A DNA stretch of 63,616 bases, counting the filler, from Octopus bimaculoides (Eukaryota): assembly GCF_001194135.2 (NCBI RefSeq). It is 5 parts of 4 records of this genome, joined end to end, with 100 filler letters (N's around TTAATTAATTAA, not from the genome) between each part and the next. Parts side by side here need not be neighbours in the genome. Positions count along the whole stretch, not along the records: positions 51,809 to 59,857 come from NC_068993.1; 4 more parts are not named here. One strand, written 5' to 3'. Both the position numbers and the translations under genes were made by a program. Of the stretch, positions 51,808-59,857 are shown piece after piece. The notes below the pieces were generated by a model. That model searched no databases and was not told the origin of the DNA. It saw nothing but the letters and a program-made list of their open reading frames with translations. Positions within the stretch are counted from its first letter, which is position 1; each line of letters opens with the position of its first letter.

Positions 51808-51830
51808 NATATACATATCTCTCTCTCTCA

Positions 51831-51866
<36 letters not shown>

Positions 51867-52251
51867 GCTATATATACATATTTATATGCATATATATATA
51901 TATATATTTATATGCACATATATATGCTTACATTTGCATATATACATATGCATATCTATGCTTATATATATATACGCATATATATATACATATATATATA
52001 TGTTATATATAGACATGTATACATATATATATGTATATATATGGATGTATATTTATGTATGTTTATATATGAATATATATGTAAATACAATATGTATGTA
52101 TATATATGTATATGTTTTGTGTATGCATATATACGTCAATATATATATGTATGTATATATATATATGTGTGTGTGTATATATTTATTTGTATATATATAT
52201 GTATATATATATATAAATATATATATATATATGTATATATATATATTTATG

Positions 52252-52308
<57 letters not shown>

Positions 52309-52330
52309 TTGTATATATAAGTATGTATAT
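51808..52330. repeat. (TA)n/(TG)n degenerate microsatellite field; similar fields at 37840-38170, 38830-39000, 39410-39960 and 41260-41600
   Basis: Direct reading; source of the YIYI-type spurious ORFs. Confidence 0.95.
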
Positions 52331-53368
52331 ATGCTGTCGCTGTGAACATTTCCCTAAGTAATGTACTGTCAGTAAAGTGACTGGTGTCTGGAAGTGAATA
52401 GAGCTTTTCACAATCCTGTGTCTTGTCAGCACCTGTCAAATTTACTCGCATGGAAAACAAAGGTTATATGTTGATGGCGTTGCTGGTGCTGTTCCTGCTG
52501 ACGTTACCGATTAAGGCATATTAAAAGTCTCACAATGAACCTAGGCACTACAGGTTTCGTCTTTTATTCATGACAGTGAGCTACTTCATCACTGAGTACG
52601 CAACAGACACTTTGTCACGCACGACCAGTTGAGAACGCTTGTAACTTTGATATAAATCAATGATTAACGGACAAACGAACAGAGCCACCATATTCTCTAG
52701 CAACATAAAATAACTGTCATAGAATATTAGGACAAAATATTTCTAGAGACTTCTCCTGCGGGAATATTAGCAGGCCCGCTTAAATACCAGCCAGTAAATG
52801 TTCAATTGATAGATACGCTTACACGAAATGTAAGCGAGACATTTCATGTAAGCTAGATATTTAATAACTATTAGACACATTGTCACAAATAGTCGTCGGG
52901 GCTATAATTTCATGTCTGTTTCAATTATAGAAGCTAGAAGCTAGTCACATCAAATATGAAGCTTTTAGGAAAATACGAAATTTAATTTTTACTGAATGTT
53001 ACCTCGCGTGACATGAAGATGCTTTTGTAACTAATTACTCCGTCAGTCGTTTGTTACTCAATATGTAACACTTGTTGTGTCTTGACGTATATATATACAT
53101 ACGTATATACATACATACATACATATGTGTGTGCGTGTGCTGTGTGTAACTCATCGGGGGTAAAGGCGTTTGTTGGGATTTAGGTGATAAATGCTTGAGT
53201 TGTTTTGTTTTCACGTTCGTTAGTTGGTGTGTGAACCTATCTATTGATATATCTTTCCAATGAACAGATCGTGAACGAATGAATCTATTCAAGATACATT
53301 CTGGGTTTGCTGATTAACAATGGAAGGCAAATGCTGAGTGGTTGTTTTGAGAGTGAGTGTGTGAGAGA

Positions 53369-53399
<31 letters not shown>

Positions 53400-54148
53400 T
53401 GAGAGAGAGAGAGAGCGAGAGAGAAAGAGAGAGAGAGAGAGAGAAACTTATACTTCATCTTATAATGTGACTATAGTTGTTATATATGTTAAATGTTCTC
53501 CAGAAACATATTGAATTCCGTTTCTGTTTATTGATTAAATTACTAGAGCAGAAAACTATATCCGATAAAAATAGCACATAAATTAAAGCGAAATATGATA
53601 TTAAACAAAAAACCAGGATAAAATATATGTTGTAAAACAGAAAGGGAAAGTAATATATTTTATAATGATAAGAGACTTCTGTACACAGAATGCTTTGTCA
53701 AACTATCACTACTGCAAAATTACTACACGATCTGCATGAAAACAAATTACTAATAGGACTTGATGTGTTCTGAAGCTTTTCTATAATTGTTGTTGCTTAC
53801 TTCCCCGATCAATCCTGATCCAGGTGATGCATTGATCAAAAACTTTGTAGTATTTTTACAAGAAGCAATGTCACCTAAGACTTTATTATTCAATGTGTTT
53901 TTTTTCTTTGACTCAGATGATACTGAGTGATTTAAATGCAGATTGGCTGCTATATCTAGCCGAAAGAGCAACCATAAAAATTCTTCTGCTAGCTTGTACT
54001 ACAACATGTGATCATTCGCTATAATTTGCATGTGCTCTCAATTCTTCACCCTCGCATCGATTCTATTCTCAGTTCTTGTATTATACACTGATTATGTATT
54101 GTTTATATTTTGTACTGCTTTCAACTGAAATTTCTTTTTGTTAACCAG

Positions 54149-54326
54149 GCTACATGCAGTGTAGGAAATGACTCTTCTTTGTTTATCTGCGAATGTATAG
54201 AAGGCTACACTGGTAGAATTTGTGAAACTTCTATAGACAACTGCCAGCGAAACAACTGCACTAACGGTGCAACATGCATTGACCTACAAAACAGTTATGA
54301 CTGTCAATGTGCTCCTGGTTTTACTG
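54149..54326 (+). CDS. Internal exon of an EGF-repeat protein (Notch/fibropellin-type EGF, about 1.5 repeats)
   Basis: Polypyrimidine acceptor tttctttttgttaaccag|GCT. Translates ATCSVGNDSSLFICECIEGYTGRICETSIDNCQRNNCTNGATCIDLQNSYDCQCAPGFT-G, with canonical EGF Cys spacing. Donor G|gtaagt, phase 1. Confidence 0.93.
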
Positions 54327-55114
54327 GTAAGTAAAATTCTTTCATAAATGGTTTAATTAATTAATTAATTAATTTATTATTAATATTATTACCAAAAGTA
54401 AGGCTATCATCATCAGAACGTAATAAAATATATATAGAAGTTAGCCTTTACATAAAACGCATTCATATATTCTCATGTAATCCACATTCTTAAACTAAAT
54501 CACATAATCTGAAACGCATCTCTTCAAAAGACTCTATGGTAATGATATATATATATACATCNNNNNNNNNNNNNNNNNNNNNNNNNNNNNNNNNNNNNNN
54601 NNNNNNNNNNNNNNNNNNNNNNNNNNNNNNTATATATATATATATATATATTTTTATCTGCTAGTAAACTGTATAGTTAATATCGGATCTCATACATATG
54701 GAACCTAATAAACTCGAAGTTTAGTATACTTTCAAAAGACGAGCAAAGATTTACATAACCCAGATATTTTAAATTAGTGTGCTTAGTACAGTCTTGAAGA
54801 TAGCCAAAACAAAAAAAAACATATCAAAAGCAAAACAATGAGAAATACAAACTCTGATGTATAGAGTTTAAATATGGATGTTCAGGATCAATTGTTACAT
54901 ACATGATTTTTTTGAAATTGTATTCTCTTCAAAGCTTATGCTTTAGCATAAGTTATGGTGAGTACACACAAAGAGACGTTATAGCAAACTAATTTAATAA
55001 AGAAAAATGCAATAGATTCAAATTTTGTAACTAATTTAATAAAGAAAACTGCGATAAATTCAAAATTTGTGTCATCGTTTCAAATTTTGACCTCAGACCA
55101 GTAACTTCGAACGA

Positions 55115-55285
55115 GGGGTAAATCGATTACATCGACCCCACTACTCAACAAGTACTTATCTTATCGACCCCGAAAGTATGAAAGACAAAGTCGACTTCGG
55201 CGGAATTTAGAATCAGGATATAAAGACGGACGAAATACTGCTAAGCAATTAGTCCGGCGTGTTAACGGTTCTGCCAGCTCGCCGA
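55115..55285 (-). mobile_element. SINE family C copy in the last intron of the EGF gene
   Basis: Reverse complement of the 7323 element head and core. Confidence 0.8.
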
Positions 55286-55393
55286 CTTCTGGTAGGGTAA
55301 AATGCTGAAGATTATGTGTTTATAATAACCTTTTCTGATTGTATAAACTTAAATAAAATATATTCTCAAATATGTAGTATTAATTAATTCTAG

Positions 55394-57444
55394 GTTTGAG
55401 ATGTGAAGTCGATGTTAATGAATGCAGCAGCGACCCGTGTTTACATGGTGGCATTTGTTACGACAGAGTGAATAGCTTTAGATGTGATTGCCCAAAGGAA
55501 ACCAGTGGAGAAATGTGTGAAGATAATTATCTCTTAACATCAACTAGCGTTACTACTGAACATGACAATAACTATCAATATACAGTCAAAACTAATTCCT
55601 CTGACGTAATATCTACAGAAAAGCAATCTGTAGATATATTTATCCCAACAAGTACAAATACCAGCATTTTAAAAATATACACCACAGAAAACACCCAGTT
55701 AGACGTAACGCAAGAATTAAATGAAAGTGGGACAATTAAATATGGATTAACCACCAATTCTTCTGATTTTTTTCTTGATAAAAGTAACGCCACCTTAACT
55801 ACAGTATCGGCAGAATCTCATACGATTAAATATAACTCGAAGGATATCACTTCAGTGACAGAAGACATACTTTTGACAACTATCGATGCTTCAAATCCAC
55901 AAACTGTTGAACAGATTCATGTGCCTGTCACCGTAGTCACAGAGAAACCCAAATTGGTTACTGATTGTTTGGTTATCAAAATATTCCGATCCAATATACT
56001 AGGCCAGATATTCTCAGAAATTCCAAAATACACTGTTTGTTGGTGGGCATATGATTTCATCTTGCCACCCATGTCTAAAGTTGGTACCACATATATTGAA
56101 AACCAGAACGAAGCGTATATTTGGGTTGAAGACACTATGAACGATTTATTACCTTTACCTTCTAAATCGATTTCACTAAACAGAGAAGATATATTGTCGT
56201 ATTTAAAAGATAATTTACAAATAATTGATAACAGCTCTCAAAATAAACTTCCACACAATTTAGTTGATTCATCATGTATTCAAATTTGGATGAAATCAAA
56301 ACGGAGAGGATTCTGGTATTTGAAAACAGAAACAGGAGATGCAAATGTTGAATATAAAAGCAAATTGAATGTTAAACGAAGATTCCTATCATCTAAGATG
56401 TTTTACTGCAAACAAAACTATACCTTGGCTGTTACAACAGACAGAAAAAGCTTGCGGAATGAAACTACACAAGCATCAATATTATCACAATCAACGTCTA
56501 TGGAGAACGAAACTACAAACATATCGACATTATCACAGTCAACATTGTTGACGAACAATACCAAATACATAACCACATTATCTCAATCAACGTTACTGAA
56601 GAACCACTCCACACGCTTGCCAACATTATCAGAACCAACTTCATTGAAAACGAAAACCATGCGTATATTAACATTATCACAACCGACGTTACAGATAAAC
56701 AAAACAATTAATATGCCAACAATATCAGAACTAATTTCGCTGAATAGCAAGAGCACACAAGTATCAAAACTGTCACAAACAACCTCAGGGATCAACAAAA
56801 CAATATACATGACAACACATGCTGTTTCCATCTCACCAAAAGAAATGACGACTGTCGGAGTAAGACGGTTTCACTTACTTCTGAGGAAACTTAACAAGAC
56901 TCATTACCAGGAGCGCTTTTCATCAATCATAAACAGAGATGGCAACAAACCAAAAATGGTGTTGACAGTTCTTCGGACAGCCAAGAGAATCTACCAGATT
57001 GGATCTGACTCAGCTCGTAAAGTTTACAGAAAAACAAAACTTCTTCTGCATATGACATTAAAGCAACTCTCTACAATTTGGATTTCGGTAAAAACTTTTG
57101 CAGTTCAACCGATCTCTAGAACTCAGGAAACTATAAGACGGACATGGACTGATTCCTGGTTAAAGGTTAATAAGGCATTCACTAAAACTCGCCAATTATT
57201 ACATGATGCTTATATGTTGGCACGGAATAACTTCAAAAATATTTATCAACGAATGAAGGAAAACACTTCAAATCTGTCAAGAGACAGCTATCAGAGATAT
57301 TACAATTATTACAACAGCTATAGCAGAAAACTTAACAAAGTATCGGGTTATTTTTCGCATATGTATAAAAATTATACAAAGAATTTGCAGAAATATTGGG
57401 AGAAGAATATTAAATATGACAACGTTAATAACAAACGCCGTTGA
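55394..57444 (+). CDS. Terminal coding exon of the same gene: Ca-binding EGF, S/T-rich stalk, unknown Cys/Trp domain, 16-aa repeats, basic amphipathic tail
   Basis: Acceptor ttaattctag|GT is phase 1 and completes Gly from the previous exon (G|GT TTG AGA TGT GAA). Contains the [40 protein letters not shown]. The 682-codon frame is uninterrupted in AT-rich DNA and ends TGA at 57442-57444. The track's initial M is really Leu (TTG). Confidence 0.9.
56458..56817 (+). repeat. Coding tandem repeat, 48 bp/16 aa, about 8 units
   Basis: Units start at aa 355, 371, 387, 403, 419, 435, 451 and 467 ([48 protein letters not shown]...). The DNA core acattatc recurs at 48-bp spacing. Confidence 0.85.
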
Positions 57445-57513
57445 TAACAATGTTTCTCTCTCACCGTCCTTTTAAAATTCTTTCCTGGTCTCTGTCTGTC
57501 TGTCTGTGTATAT

Positions 57514-57553
<40 letters not shown>

Positions 57554-58079
57554 GTGTGTGTGCATGCGNNNNNNNNNNNNNNNNNNNNNNNNNNNNNNTG
57601 TGTGTGTGTGTGTGTGTGTATAAAACAAGAAGACAAAAAATTAAATGCTCTAAGAATCCTGTTTTGAATAAAAAGAGAATATGTACATCTTCATGATAAT
57701 ATGCTATCGGTTTCAATTGTCAAAGAAAATCTAGTCGTGAAATAAGAAAAAAAGGAAAATAATTTGAAGTAAATTAAATTAATCTGTGATGAATGCAATT
57801 TTCAAAGTCCATTTGTTTATGTTAGAAAAAGTACATGGCTATAGTTGTTTGATTCCCACCGGTGGTTGCTTTGTCAATATATTAATAGTAACAGTTTTAG
57901 CAGTGACAGTAACATATTGTTACCCTTTGTAGCAGAACTGGTCAATGTTCCTTATTGGCAATGCTGATATTAAAGAGTGGTTCGTAATGCTATGGTGGTC
58001 ATTTCAGAAGTAGCAGCAATAACGGAACCGATGGTAGTAGGTTGTGGCGGTAAGTGCTTCAATAATAAAAGTATTAGTA

Positions 58080-58166
<87 letters not shown>

Positions 58167-59444
58167 GGAAAGAAGAAGTGTATTCTAAATCAGGAAAGAA
58201 AGCAGGGGAAATTGTTTTGGGGTTTGAAAATGCTCCTGTATCTCAAAACCTTTAGTGTTGTTCAAATGTTATAATAGATGTATATTATGAATTTCCGCGA
58301 ACACATGACCTTATATTACTGTCTATCTCCGTGAAACTCATAGGAATTTCTATGAATATTTGATCGTGGAAACATTTTTCTCCGAATTTTCCCTTGTAAC
58401 GTTAAACTCTCTTCAACCCTTTTCTTATTTATTTACCTTTCTTAATTTTTACCATCGATAAACAAAAGAATTGTCGAAACCGGTTTGATATTTGAATAAA
58501 TTGTATTACAAAACTTAAAACGACTACACATTTTGATATTCAAGTGCATTTTCAAACGACAAAAGGAAATTCTCATTTATGGTAATTATTCTACCGCTTG
58601 CTTTTGCCGAACCGTTAAGTTACGGGGATTCAAAGACACTGACACCGTTTGTCAAGCAGTGGTAATGGGTAAACACAACAGAAAGATACACACACGCATA
58701 CACAGACATATATATATATATAAGGTTAAGAAGGGTATTGGATTCAACCAAACTCAAAGATACAGGTAATACTGAGTAAGTGCTGTATAACGGCTAGTTT
58801 TGCCTCATACAACGAATGGGGCAAAACTAACTAACTAACTATATATATATATANNNNNNNNNNNNNNNNNNNNNNNNNNNNNNNNNNNNNNNNNNNNNNN
58901 NNNNNNNNNNNNNNNNNNNNNNNNNNNNNNNNNNNNNNNNNNNNNNNNNNNNNNNNNNNNNNNNNNNNNNNNNNNNNNNNNNNNNNNNNNNNNNNNNNNN
59001 NNNNNNNNNNNNNNNNNNNNNNNNNNNNNNNNNNNNNNNNNNNNNNNNNNNNNNNNNNNNNNNNNNNNNNNNNNNNNNNNNNNNNNNNNNNNNNNNNNNN
59101 NNNNNNNNNNNNNNNNNNNNNNNNNNNNNNNNNNNNNNNNNNNNNNNNNNNNNNNNNNNNNNNNNNNNNNNNNNNNNNNNNNNNNNNNNNNNNNNNNNNN
59201 NNNNNNNNNNNNNNNNNNNNNNNNNNNNNNNNNNNNNNNNNNNNNNNNNNNNNNNNNNNNNNNNNNNNNNNNNNNNNNNNNNNNNNNNNNNNNNNNNNNN
59301 NNNNNNNNNNNNNNNNNNNNNNNNNNNNNNNNNNNNNNNNNNNNNNNNNNNNNNNNNNNNNNNNNNNNNNNNNNNNNNNNNNNNNNNNNNNNNNNNNNNN
59401 NNNNNNNNNNNNNNNNNNNNNNNNNNNNNNNNNNNNNNNNNNNN

Positions 59445-59477
<33 letters not shown>

Positions 59478-59481
<4 letters not shown>

Positions 59482-59800
59482 CTTTATATTGCCCACAGAG
59501 GGCTAAACATAGAGGGTACAAACATGGACAGGCAAAGTGATTACGTCGACCCCAGTGAGTAACTGGTAATTATTTTATCGACCTCGAAAGGATGAAAGGC
59601 AAAGTCGACCTCGGTGGAGTTTGCACTCAGAACTTAAGGACGGGTGAAATACCGCTAAGTATTTCATACGACAGGCCTCTTTCAGTTTATAAACTTCATT
59701 CACAAGCCCGAGAAAACACTTGCTCAATGTGCCACGCAATGAGACTGAAGCCGAAACCATATGGTTGAGAAAGAAGCTTCTTACCACCCAGTCACGCCTG
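59478..59800 (-). mobile_element. SINE family C (59478-59670) followed by a family B head remnant
   Basis: Reverse-complement matches to both families. Confidence 0.7.
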
Positions 59801-59816
59801 CATCAATACACACGCG

Positions 59817-59857
<41 letters not shown>

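Follow-up and report, generated by a model that had tools for sequence, protein, structure and literature searches.

The window analysed here, a 63,616-nucleotide stretch of joined parts of the Octopus bimaculoides genome, includes a piece that carries the last two exons of LOC106880385, whose product comprises, from the N- to the C-terminus, a signal peptide, an MNNL/C2 region, a DSL domain, EGF repeats, a mucin-like stalk and a basic tail (Table 1). The penultimate coding exon is bounded by an acceptor AG at 54147-54148 and by a donor (G/gtaagt) after 54326, and its EGF is recognized by Pfam with E = 8e-13. The terminal exon starts at a phase-1 acceptor (ttctag/GT) and matches the protein P0001 with 100% identity over its full length; its ORF (55396-57444) is a single unbroken exon of 682 codons, and the surrounding DNA has a G+C content of 33%. 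Codon 490 of this ORF begins at position 56863 and the stop codon ends at 57444, and the residue numbering of the original prediction was right to within one residue. The same architecture is seen in independent assemblies and gene models. No RNA families were found on either strand of the piece, and the minus-strand ORFs across the tail are short or cross microsatellites and N gaps. In the literature, no paper was found that mentions LOC106880385 or XP_014785705.

Upstream of the tail, P0001 scores 26.7 bits for the DSL domain (cut-off 24.2) and contains four EGFs, while its orthologue P0004 matches MNNL with E = 4e-17 and DSL with E = 3e-10. The Cys-containing middle domain, in which the dibasic motifs K-x-K-R-R and x-R-R-F are conserved in the alignment of the cephalopod members, has no relative in Pfam or the PDB. 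The stalk that follows contains a 48-nt (16-residue) tandem repeat at 56481-56595 and is 40% identical to its Argonauta counterpart, with 52 gapped positions. The tail had been proposed to sit on an EGF-mucin stalk, and it does indeed follow an EGF domain and this Ser/Thr-rich, sequon-rich repeat region.

Table 1. Features at the LOC106880385 locus (positions along the window; residues of the terminal-exon ORF in parentheses)
Feature	Position	Strand	Evidence and remarks
Penultimate coding exon, LOC106880385	54149..54326	+	EGF repeats, P0001 aa ~272-333; tblastn of P0001 on the piece
Terminal coding exon	55394..57444	+	P0001 aa 333-1015; TGA stop at 57442-57444
Last EGF domain (aa 1-42)	55396..55521	+	Pfam EGF E = 4e-5, passes curated cut-off
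Acidic S/T-rich linker (aa 43-185)	55522..55950	+	Composition; weakly conserved, 28% identity to Argonauta
Conserved Cys-containing middle domain (aa 186-345)	55951..56430	+	58% identity to Argonauta
Mucin-like stalk (aa 346-488)	56431..56859	+	S/T-rich, numerous NxS/T sequons
Tail lead-in (aa 489-517)	56860..56946	+	Short basic helix (20 residues) and Gly/Pro linker; alignments, AF2
Domain core (aa 518-672)	56947..57411	+	About 14 amphipathic-helix hendecads, one phase
Pro572 codon	57109..57111	+	Invariant in 11/11 aligned sequences; sole conserved helix break
Variable basic C-terminal end, finishing in a 10-residue segment, and stop	57412..57444	+	Sequence, alignment
AATAAA, candidate polyadenylation signal	57667..57672	+	About 225 nt 3' of the stop; presumed signal

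The tail is strongly basic, with a net charge of +28. Residues 491-682 of the ORF contain 42 Lys/Arg, 10 Asp/Glu, no Cys and two Pro, exactly as had been counted by hand. Its lead-in, for which AF2 predicts a helix at residues 2-23 (tail numbering), is conserved only among the cephalopod members. The apolar face of the core is aliphatic in its first half and rich in Tyr, Trp and Phe in its second, with Lys/Arg across the polar side and along both of its flanks.

In hydrophobicity, the tail gives a power spectrum with one dominant sharp peak at T = 3.65-3.66 residues (11/3), with z = 13.2 on the Kyte-Doolittle and 15.1 on the Fauchere-Pliska scale against 5000 shuffles and a family-wise p of at most 0.0002 over all periods tested. 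The phase is steady (-17 to -59 degrees) across every 44-residue window of residues 518-682, a span of about 165 residues. When the sequence is written in 15 rows of 11, the apolar residues occupy columns 0, 3, 7, 10 and partly 4; columns 7, 10, 0 and 3 follow the a-d-e-h hendecad pattern, with its period of 3.67, over all 15 rows. Over the whole segment, the hydrophobic moment at 98.2 degrees reaches 0.337, compared with 0.071 +/- 0.037 (maximum 0.214) in shuffles. At T = 11 and T = 22 the tail spectrum shows no surplus of power (z about -0.8), and its signal is the 11/3 helical harmonic rather than an 11-residue sequence repeat. The 11-residue periodicity of the original prediction is upheld as helical geometry (z = 13-15 against shuffles), but not as a recurrence of residues every 11 positions. 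A sequence repeat of that length was rejected because the corresponding power is missing, no tandem DNA repeat occurs within the tail and the best internal match is marginal. Self-matches at offsets of 11, 22 and 33 gave z = 2.2, 2.6 and 0.8, respectively, and thus did not exceed other multiples of 3.65. Two 10-residue segments lying 51 residues (about 14 turns) apart had been put forward as internal duplicates; their ungapped score is 33, and shuffles reach 31 at the 95th percentile and 36 at most, which makes the sequence evidence for such a duplication marginal.

Controls run with the same script place this geometry among known classes. The peak lies at T = 3.66 in both apoA-I 44-243 and alpha-synuclein 1-95 and at 3.50 in tropomyosin, and myoglobin shows none; a heptad coiled coil was rejected, the power of the whole tail at 3.5 being approximately zero. 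The normalized coherence of the tail (0.114) lies between those of apoA-I 44-243 (0.126) and alpha-synuclein 1-95 (0.110) and its moment is close to that of apoA-I (0.352), in agreement with the apolipoprotein- and synuclein-like geometry that had been suggested. A non-helical fold was not predicted: AF2 models the tail as nearly all helix (residues 32-80 and 85-192), although with low confidence (pLDDT 47 and 53 in two models), and the monomer, with a pTM of 0.25, consists of long helices without a confidently packed compact fold. Pro572 divides a helix of about 50 residues from one of about 100, and the AF2 break falls at tail residues 81-84. The domain sequence is thus very probably that of two long amphipathic α-helices with a single invariant proline between them.

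After the EGFs, the tail is the best-conserved region of the protein (68-71% identity to Argonauta). One exhaustive HMMER run with a four-octopod profile against 1.84 billion representatives found the domain only in 11 protein clusters besides the protein of the window; the organism label is cephalopod or gastropod wherever there is one, three clusters having none. Every member is a DSL/EGF or mucin-like protein, with the domain always at or near the C-terminus and after a mucin-like stretch. In the gastropod member P0011 it is followed by Gly/Tyr/Asn-rich low-complexity sequence, which we regard as characteristic of secreted structural proteins. The peaks of all 12 tails fall at 3.63-3.68 and exceed every shuffle, and the approximately 100 residues after the invariant proline keep a single phase in 11/11 sequences. 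In most cephalopod sequences a three-residue insertion rotates the pre-proline helix by 65-90 degrees relative to the post-proline helix, and for this reason one continuous flat face is not universal. Conservation tracks the hendecad register: it amounts to 0.61-0.74 in apolar and 0.38-0.46 in polar columns, all columns that are at least 90% identical lie on the apolar face, and the invariant residues on this face are W, V, A, Y and one Pro. W562, Y606, Y632, Y635 and Y639 are invariant between gastropods and cephalopods.

No described family accounts for the domain. Above the curated cut-offs, Pfam has no match for the tail in the ORF, in seven full-length members or in 11/11 tails, and ApoO and Apo-CII appear no better than at E = 0.05-0.1. 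A profile search of the PDB returned nothing significant, the top weak matches being helical bundles (E = 0.05-0.1, the best, at 0.05, a designed bundle) and Apolipophorin-III reaching E = 2.3. Foldseek against the PDB gave a best E of 4, which is uninformative given the low-confidence AF2 query. A word-indexed search with the 11-sequence alignment recovered a single 84-residue fragment, and a search with the P0012 tail had zero matches, so that the census of the family depends on the one exhaustive HMMER run. Kinship with apolipoproteins, perilipins or synucleins, as distinct from likeness in geometry, is therefore contradicted by the missing Pfam matches in 11 members and the missing PDB sequence and fold matches. 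The core and its lead-in encode a conserved C-terminal domain of secreted mollusc glycoproteins without any database description; existing annotations ('notch homolog 2', 'mucin-5AC-like', 'uncharacterized') overlook it, and it merits definition as a family.

In canonical DSL ligands, a transmembrane domain lies at the corresponding place, with an intracellular domain beyond the EGFs (PMC2504490). A basic stretch that follows a stalk looks like a stop-transfer region with a cytoplasmic tail, and the octopus tail could accordingly be read as the cytoplasmic part of a type I membrane protein with an overlooked transmembrane segment, or as an annotation artefact. A simple scan of 19-residue Kyte-Doolittle windows, with a mean of about 1.6 taken as transmembrane grade, found no such window outside the signal peptides in 12 members; the best internal window of any member scores 1.50 (P0002) and that of P0001 scores 1.17. 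A hidden transmembrane helix or GPI signal was rejected on the same grounds, there being no hydrophobic window and the C-terminus being polar and basic. Together with the unbroken 682-codon exon in DNA of low G+C content and the recurrence of the architecture in independent assemblies and gene models, this makes both versions of that reading most improbable.

The tail had also been suggested to be lytic or antimicrobial, and a cationic peptide could be freed from the C-terminus by proteolysis. Many 18-residue windows of the tail are high in both moment and charge (HeliQuest-type D > 1.34), and the Octopus tail has dibasic sites at its start (VRR/F) and end (KRR). The VRRF site is not conserved, its Argonauta counterpart being VRLF, and conservation covers the domain as a single unit of 155 residues, with an apolar face kept residue by residue across two mollusc classes, whereas antimicrobial peptides evolve fast. 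Peptides of 20-40 residues would gain nothing from a phase kept over about 100-165 residues, and both this conservation of the apolar face and the permanent attachment to large glycoproteins speak against a lytic peptide of the generic kind. The suggestion finds no support here, and a peptide precursor is very unlikely.

Self-association is harder to set aside. The helices could pack with their own copies or with a partner, either in a bundle or in an untwisted or right-handed coiled coil of the hendecad type, multimerizing the mucin-like proteins much as gel-forming mucins are multimerized through C-terminal domains. The a-d-e-h apolar pattern of the tail equally characterizes the cores of hendecad coiled coils; its apolar residues show strict conservation, with a single invariant proline hinge, and the weak, non-significant PDB matches are helical bundles. 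Coiled coils of the hendecad type form an established class (PMC4786415), and they share with the tail a period of 3.67 over many turns. The distribution of charge differs. In the tail, the columns flanking the core are 28-33% Lys/Arg and only 1-3% Asp/Glu, so that in a homomer of this +28 domain like charges would be opposed, while the few acidic residues lie at the centre of the polar face, where columns with 8-14% Asp/Glu also hold 24-34% Lys/Arg. Known hendecads such as the stalks of tetrabrachion and of trimeric autotransporters have aliphatic cores and charge-balanced flanks. Half of the C-terminal part of the putative core of the tail is Tyr, Trp or Phe, and aromatic-rich cores are unusual in coiled coils. 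The AF2 monomer shows no confident packing either, and oligomerization is on balance unlikely, while retaining an appreciable share of the probability.

Basic flanks with central acidic residues resemble the snorkelling-lysine pattern that lipid-associating helices of Segrest's class A show, although the polar face of the tail is cationic and not zwitterionic. This pattern favours a surface over self-association and is unfavourable for a homomeric coiled coil. From the chemistry of the tail, binding to lipid or to a polyanion may reasonably be expected, and one form of it would be attachment to a matrix, either through a Lys/Arg face on sulfated glycans (glycosaminoglycans or the protein's own mucin glycans) or through a Tyr/Trp stripe on a polysaccharide such as chitin, holding the protein within mucus, cuticle or extracellular matrix. 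In favour are the extracellular location and extreme basicity of the protein; BBxB-type clusters are plentiful, an invariant aromatic row runs along a straight face and the low-complexity sequence that follows the domain in P0011 points in the same direction. Polyanion binding alone, however, requires neither a conserved apolar face nor phase coherence over 165 residues, and no recognized carbohydrate-binding family was matched. Matrix binding overlaps with the explanation preferred below, both being surface tethers, and taken by itself is rather improbable.

Our tentative preference, held at somewhat less than even probability, is that the tail is a surface-association module standing in for a membrane anchor, the anchoring function itself being held with a touch more reserve. 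The 11/3 peak, the constant phase, the coherence and moment like those of apoA-I and alpha-synuclein, the conservation of the tail and the lack of a transmembrane segment all speak for it. On its own, the domain would be unstructured or loosely structured, and straight 11/3 helices would form when it lies on an extended anionic and partly apolar surface, just as the 11-mer (3-11) helices of apolipoproteins and synuclein fold upon lipid contact (PMC5889406). The surface would most likely be a membrane or lipid interface, whether the luminal or outer leaflet of the cell itself or a microbial one, and alternatively a sulfated-glycan matrix. The DSL/EGF head at the end of the mucin stalk would thereby be tethered, the tail taking the role of the transmembrane anchor of canonical Delta/Serrate ligands and membrane mucins. 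Several points weigh against such an anchor. Residue-by-residue conservation of the apolar face exceeds what generic lipid binding needs and suggests a specific partner or packed assembly, and animal cells do not have a strongly anionic outer leaflet, so that sulfated glycans or microbial surfaces may suit a +28 domain better; the three-residue insertion of most cephalopod sequences, the ambiguity of the a-d-e-h pattern and the low confidence of both AF2 models also count here.

Comparison with known systems delimits what is new. Exchangeable apolipoproteins (apoA-I/A-IV/E; PF01442) likewise contain a proline-punctuated amphipathic 11/3 helix of approximately 165-200 residues in one phase. In charge pattern the resemblance is partial: basic residues at the interface and a few acidic ones at the face centre recur in the tail, but the polar face is cationic there rather than zwitterionic. 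The tail has this amphipathic 11/3 helix of more than 100 residues, but neither a match to the family profile nor the 11/22-residue proline-punctuated repeats: 22-mers are absent and there is one invariant proline instead of one per 22 residues. Its net charge contrasts with the -6 of the apolipoprotein, its apolar face is Tyr-rich and it is fused to a DSL/EGF-mucin protein. The 11/3 (3-11) helix is also shared with the N-terminal region of alpha-synuclein and the 11-mer regions of perilipins (PMC5889406). The tail and alpha-synuclein 1-95 have the same moderate mean hydrophobicity (0.24). Further points in common with these proteins are Ser/Thr in the apolar face and a helix predicted with low confidence, which would agree with folding on contact. 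Synuclein and perilipin, however, are cytosolic and near-neutral, with 11-/33-mer repeats (KTKEGV and similar), while the tail belongs to the secretory pathway, is non-repetitive and is far more basic, aromatic and conserved residue by residue; neither the 11-mer consensus (T = 11 test) nor a PAT domain (Pfam) was found in it. Long 11/3 helices are known from lipid-transport proteins and cytosolic lipid-surface proteins, and this conserved, unannotated domain adds an extracellular, strongly cationic, Tyr-rich version, common to cephalopods and gastropods and fused to Delta/Serrate-like and mucin-like ectodomains where an anchor is expected.

A functional parallel to the proposed role may be drawn with carboxypeptidase E and the prohormone convertases, in which C-terminal luminal amphipathic helices tether the proteins to secretory-granule membranes; these, as proposed for the tail, are peripheral C-terminal tethers in place of a transmembrane segment in the secretory pathway, although they measure about 20-40 residues, are not hendecad-coherent and are not expected to be similar in sequence to the tail. 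With the DSL ligands (Delta/Serrate/Jagged; PMC2504490) the octopus protein shares the N-terminal MNNL/C2, DSL and EGF arrangement, but it has neither their single transmembrane helix nor their intracellular domain, the membrane-proximal, transmembrane and intracellular parts being replaced by the mucin stalk, the Cys domain and the basic helical tail. The lack of a transmembrane domain is shared with the DSL-1-type proteins of nematodes. Secreted DSL proteins of C. elegans were reportedly described by Chen and Greenwald in 2004, a study cited in PMC2504490.

The full form of the proposal, that an apparently mollusc-only, cationic and aromatic 11/3 domain of about 155 residues is an in-plane anchor on a membrane or anionic surface, taking the place of the transmembrane and intracellular parts both in a Delta/Serrate-type ligand and in membrane-type mucins, is one that we consider unlikely. 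If true, cephalopods would possess a Notch-ligand-like protein that is tethered peripherally and lacks a transmembrane segment, and whose signalling or decoy behaviour would be set by reversible surface binding. An oligomerization or matrix module would instead bear on the assembly of mollusc mucus and cuticle proteins. A peripheral anchor would be a new way to present a DSL/EGF head on a surface, and would raise the question of how a Notch-ligand-like protein works without the endocytic pulling exerted by transmembrane ligands.

The post-EGF part of the open reading frame at 55396–57444 (+) matched P0001, the 1015-residue 'uncharacterized protein LOC106880385 isoform X2' of Octopus bimaculoides, with 100% identity and 100% query coverage. 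Mapping this protein back onto the DNA located its last two coding exons on the piece at 51809–59857, which is AT-rich eukaryotic DNA (~33% G+C) where assembly gaps and microsatellites of the TA, CA and GA types abound. TA or TG microsatellites lie beside the N runs, one of which falls within the presumed 3' UTR, ~125 nt past the stop codon; the coding sequence is untouched by any of them. The repeat-like intron stretch (54987–55300) gave no Rfam or tRNA-like match.

Features of the LOC106880385 region (residues numbered from the start of the reading frame; identity is to the Argonauta hians orthologue)
Feature	Position	Strand	Residues	Identity (%)	Remarks
Penultimate coding exon	54149–54326	+			codes EGF repeats; donor G/gtaagt at end
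N run	54562–54630				assembly gap
42-bp tandem duplication	54987–55070				in intron ahead of terminal exon
~240-bp stretch	after duplication, to 55300				G+C above surrounding intron; resembles interspersed repeat
Terminal coding exon	55394–57444	+			last 682 residues, uninterrupted; acceptor ttctag/GT, phase 1; TGA 57442–57444
EGF domain			1–42	54	
Linker			43–185	28	acidic, S/T-rich
Middle domain	55951–56430		186–345	58	Cys-containing
Stalk			346–488	40	S/T- and NxS/T-rich
Stalk tandem repeat	56481–56595				48-nt unit (16 residues, [10 protein letters not shown]-type), 2.4 copies, 75% match
Tail			489–682	68–71	
AATAAA	~225 nt 3' of stop codon	+			sequence reading
N run	57570–57598				assembly gap
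N run	about 58880–59440				assembly gap

The original prediction described residues 491–682 as a strongly basic tail with the 11-residue amphipathic geometry of apolipoproteins, perilipins and synucleins. Its residue count is exact (42 Lys/Arg, 10 Asp/Glu, no Cys and two Pro), and the amphipathic periodicity at 11/3 exceeds that of 5000 shuffles with z = 13.2 (Kyte–Doolittle) and 15.1 (Fauchere–Pliska); the hydrophobic moment of the whole segment at 98.2° per residue is 0.337, against 0.071 ± 0.037 for shuffles. The hydrophobicity spectrum displays a single dominant peak at 3.65–3.66 residues (family-wise p ≤ 0.0002), the narrowness of which denotes long-range coherence, and the phase is constant to within about 40° in every 44-residue window from residue 518 to the end. 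When the sequence is written in 11-residue rows, columns 0, 3, 7, 10 and partly 4 are apolar through 15 rows, an a-d-e-h pattern that spans about 130–160° of the helical wheel. Control sequences passed through the same script gave peak periods and normalised coherences of 3.66 and 0.126 for apoA-I 44–243, 3.66 and 0.110 for α-synuclein 1–95, and 3.50 and 0.091 for tropomyosin, while the peak of myoglobin was not significant (0.038). The values for Octopus residues 518–682 (3.66 and 0.114) are close to those of apoA-I and α-synuclein, and the proposed geometric likeness is therefore quantitatively right. The periodicity is a helical harmonic and not an 11-mer sequence repeat; for the suggested recurrence every 11 residues, neither an excess of power at periods of 11 and 22 nor a tandem DNA repeat within the tail was found. 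The proposed internal duplicate ([10 protein letters not shown] / [10 protein letters not shown]), with a spacing of 51 residues (about 14 turns), is marginal, its score of 33 lying just above the shuffle 95th percentile of 31.

Judged by comparison with its relatives, the tail is a conserved domain rather than a compositional quirk. When 1.84 billion representative proteins were searched exhaustively by HMMER with a narrow profile of four octopod tails, only 11 clusters matched. These include the Octopus and Argonauta orthologues of LOC106880385, another O. bimaculoides gene (XP_014785705, 'mucin-5AC-like') with the Argonauta counterpart of that gene, one protein of the cuttlefish Acanthosepion pharaonis, two gastropod proteins (from Batillaria attramentaria and Littorina saxatilis, the latter 'mucin-2-like') and three assembly-derived proteins. 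All 12 tails are basic (K+R 25–43 versus D+E 2–16) and Tyr-rich, and all have a peak at 3.63–3.68 residues that is higher than in any of 200 shuffles, although as related homologues they are not 12 independent observations. Conservation tracks the hendecad register (0.61–0.74 in apolar columns, 0.38–0.46 in polar ones), and every column that is ≥90% identical falls on the apolar face (V525, L551, L555, L558, W562, V565, P572, I580, A594, Y606, Y632, Y635, Y639, Y642, L664 and W668). A single phase is kept over ~100 residues past the invariant Pro in 11/11 aligned sequences; the helix preceding it is in phase in Octopus and the gastropods, and turned by 65–90° where a 3-residue insertion is present.

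AlphaFold2, a check proposed with the original prediction, modelled the tail as helical with low confidence (residues 2–23, 32–80 and 85–192 of the tail; mean pLDDT 47 with four sequences and 53 with 11, pTM 0.25). The model suggests helices broken at the invariant Pro without a confident compact fold, as might be expected of a conditionally folding or partner-dependent helix, to which, because of this low confidence, it lends weak support. No Pfam family scored above cut-off in the tail of any member, and neither a PDB profile search with the tail (no significant match) nor Foldseek with its model returned a relative.

An 11/3 apolar stripe runs straight only if the helix is slightly unwound, and hendecad coiled coils are one setting in which it occurs. 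The other is that of helices on an extended surface, as in apolipoproteins, synuclein and perilipins (PMC5889406). The charge map partly separates the two: in the family as a whole, the columns beside the apolar face contain 28–33% K/R and only 1–3% D/E, the polar face bears its few acidic residues in a central cluster, and aromatic residues make up 50% of the apolar face in the C-terminal half (38% Tyr). Flanks that are exclusively basic are suited to snorkelling on an anionic interface, and would repel one another in a homomeric coiled coil. Interfacial Tyr and Trp likewise suit a membrane or glycan surface. Residues are nonetheless conserved so tightly that this counts as a real argument against the surface reading, and oligomerization stays a live rival.

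The setting of the tail bears on the same question. P0001 has an N-terminal hydrophobic stretch of signal-peptide grade (Kyte–Doolittle scan), a DSL domain and four EGFs (Pfam), to which the Argonauta orthologue adds the MNNL/C2 domain of Notch ligands; a crude scan detected no transmembrane-grade segment past the N-terminus (19-residue windows ≤ 1.17 Kyte–Doolittle mean), nor any besides signal peptides in the other family members. In every member the domain lies at or near the C-terminus behind mucin-like sequence, usually preceded by EGFs and, in cephalopods, also by DSL. This is the position of the transmembrane anchor in canonical DSL ligands and in membrane mucins (PMC2504490). Because of its basic-only flanks, interfacial Tyr/Trp and position, the tail is best read as a putative peripheral surface-tethering module, the target of which could possibly be a sulfated-glycan or chitin matrix instead of lipid. 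Neither the lytic role once suggested nor a release of lytic peptides received support in the analysis.

The 11/3 geometry itself is already known, whereas the tail domain is without description in the sources searched, where neither a paper citing LOC106880385 nor a family model for the domain was found. The known 11/3 families share neither its chemistry (a net charge of +28, a stripe of Tyr, a location outside the cell and the lack of a sequence repeat) nor its context, which in molluscs is a Delta/Serrate-like protein devoid of a transmembrane segment, and mucins.

The middle domain (~160 residues), flanked by two mucin-like stretches and common to all cephalopod members, has no relative in Pfam or PDB; two of its several Cys are invariant in these members, and it also contains invariant Trp and Pro. 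Its motifs MK-x-KRR and x-RRFLSSKM, kept in LOC106880385 orthologues, look like candidate proprotein-convertase sites. The stalk around its tandem repeat is rich in N-glycosylation sequons and is partly deleted in Argonauta. The Octopus vulgaris orthologue is publicly named 'neurogenic locus notch homolog 2', but has a ligand-type (DSL/EGF) architecture with no Notch domains, and the 'mucin-5AC-like' paralogue shares the middle domain and the tail and has a DSL domain as well; both names look wrong or uninformative. In the gastropod members, Gly/Tyr/Asn- and Pro/Gly-rich low-complexity sequence (long in Littorina, briefer in Batillaria) comes after the tail, so that in these species the domain lies inside a larger C-terminal region resembling structural proteins. 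One assembly-derived member (P0005; ENA ERZ21867824, 3001–5280 of its locus), probably from a decapodiform cephalopod, encodes four EGFs, stalk, middle domain and tail in one uninterrupted 759-codon reading frame, its terminal exon holding more EGFs than that of Octopus, and has a ~35-residue extension with RRKR beyond the tail.
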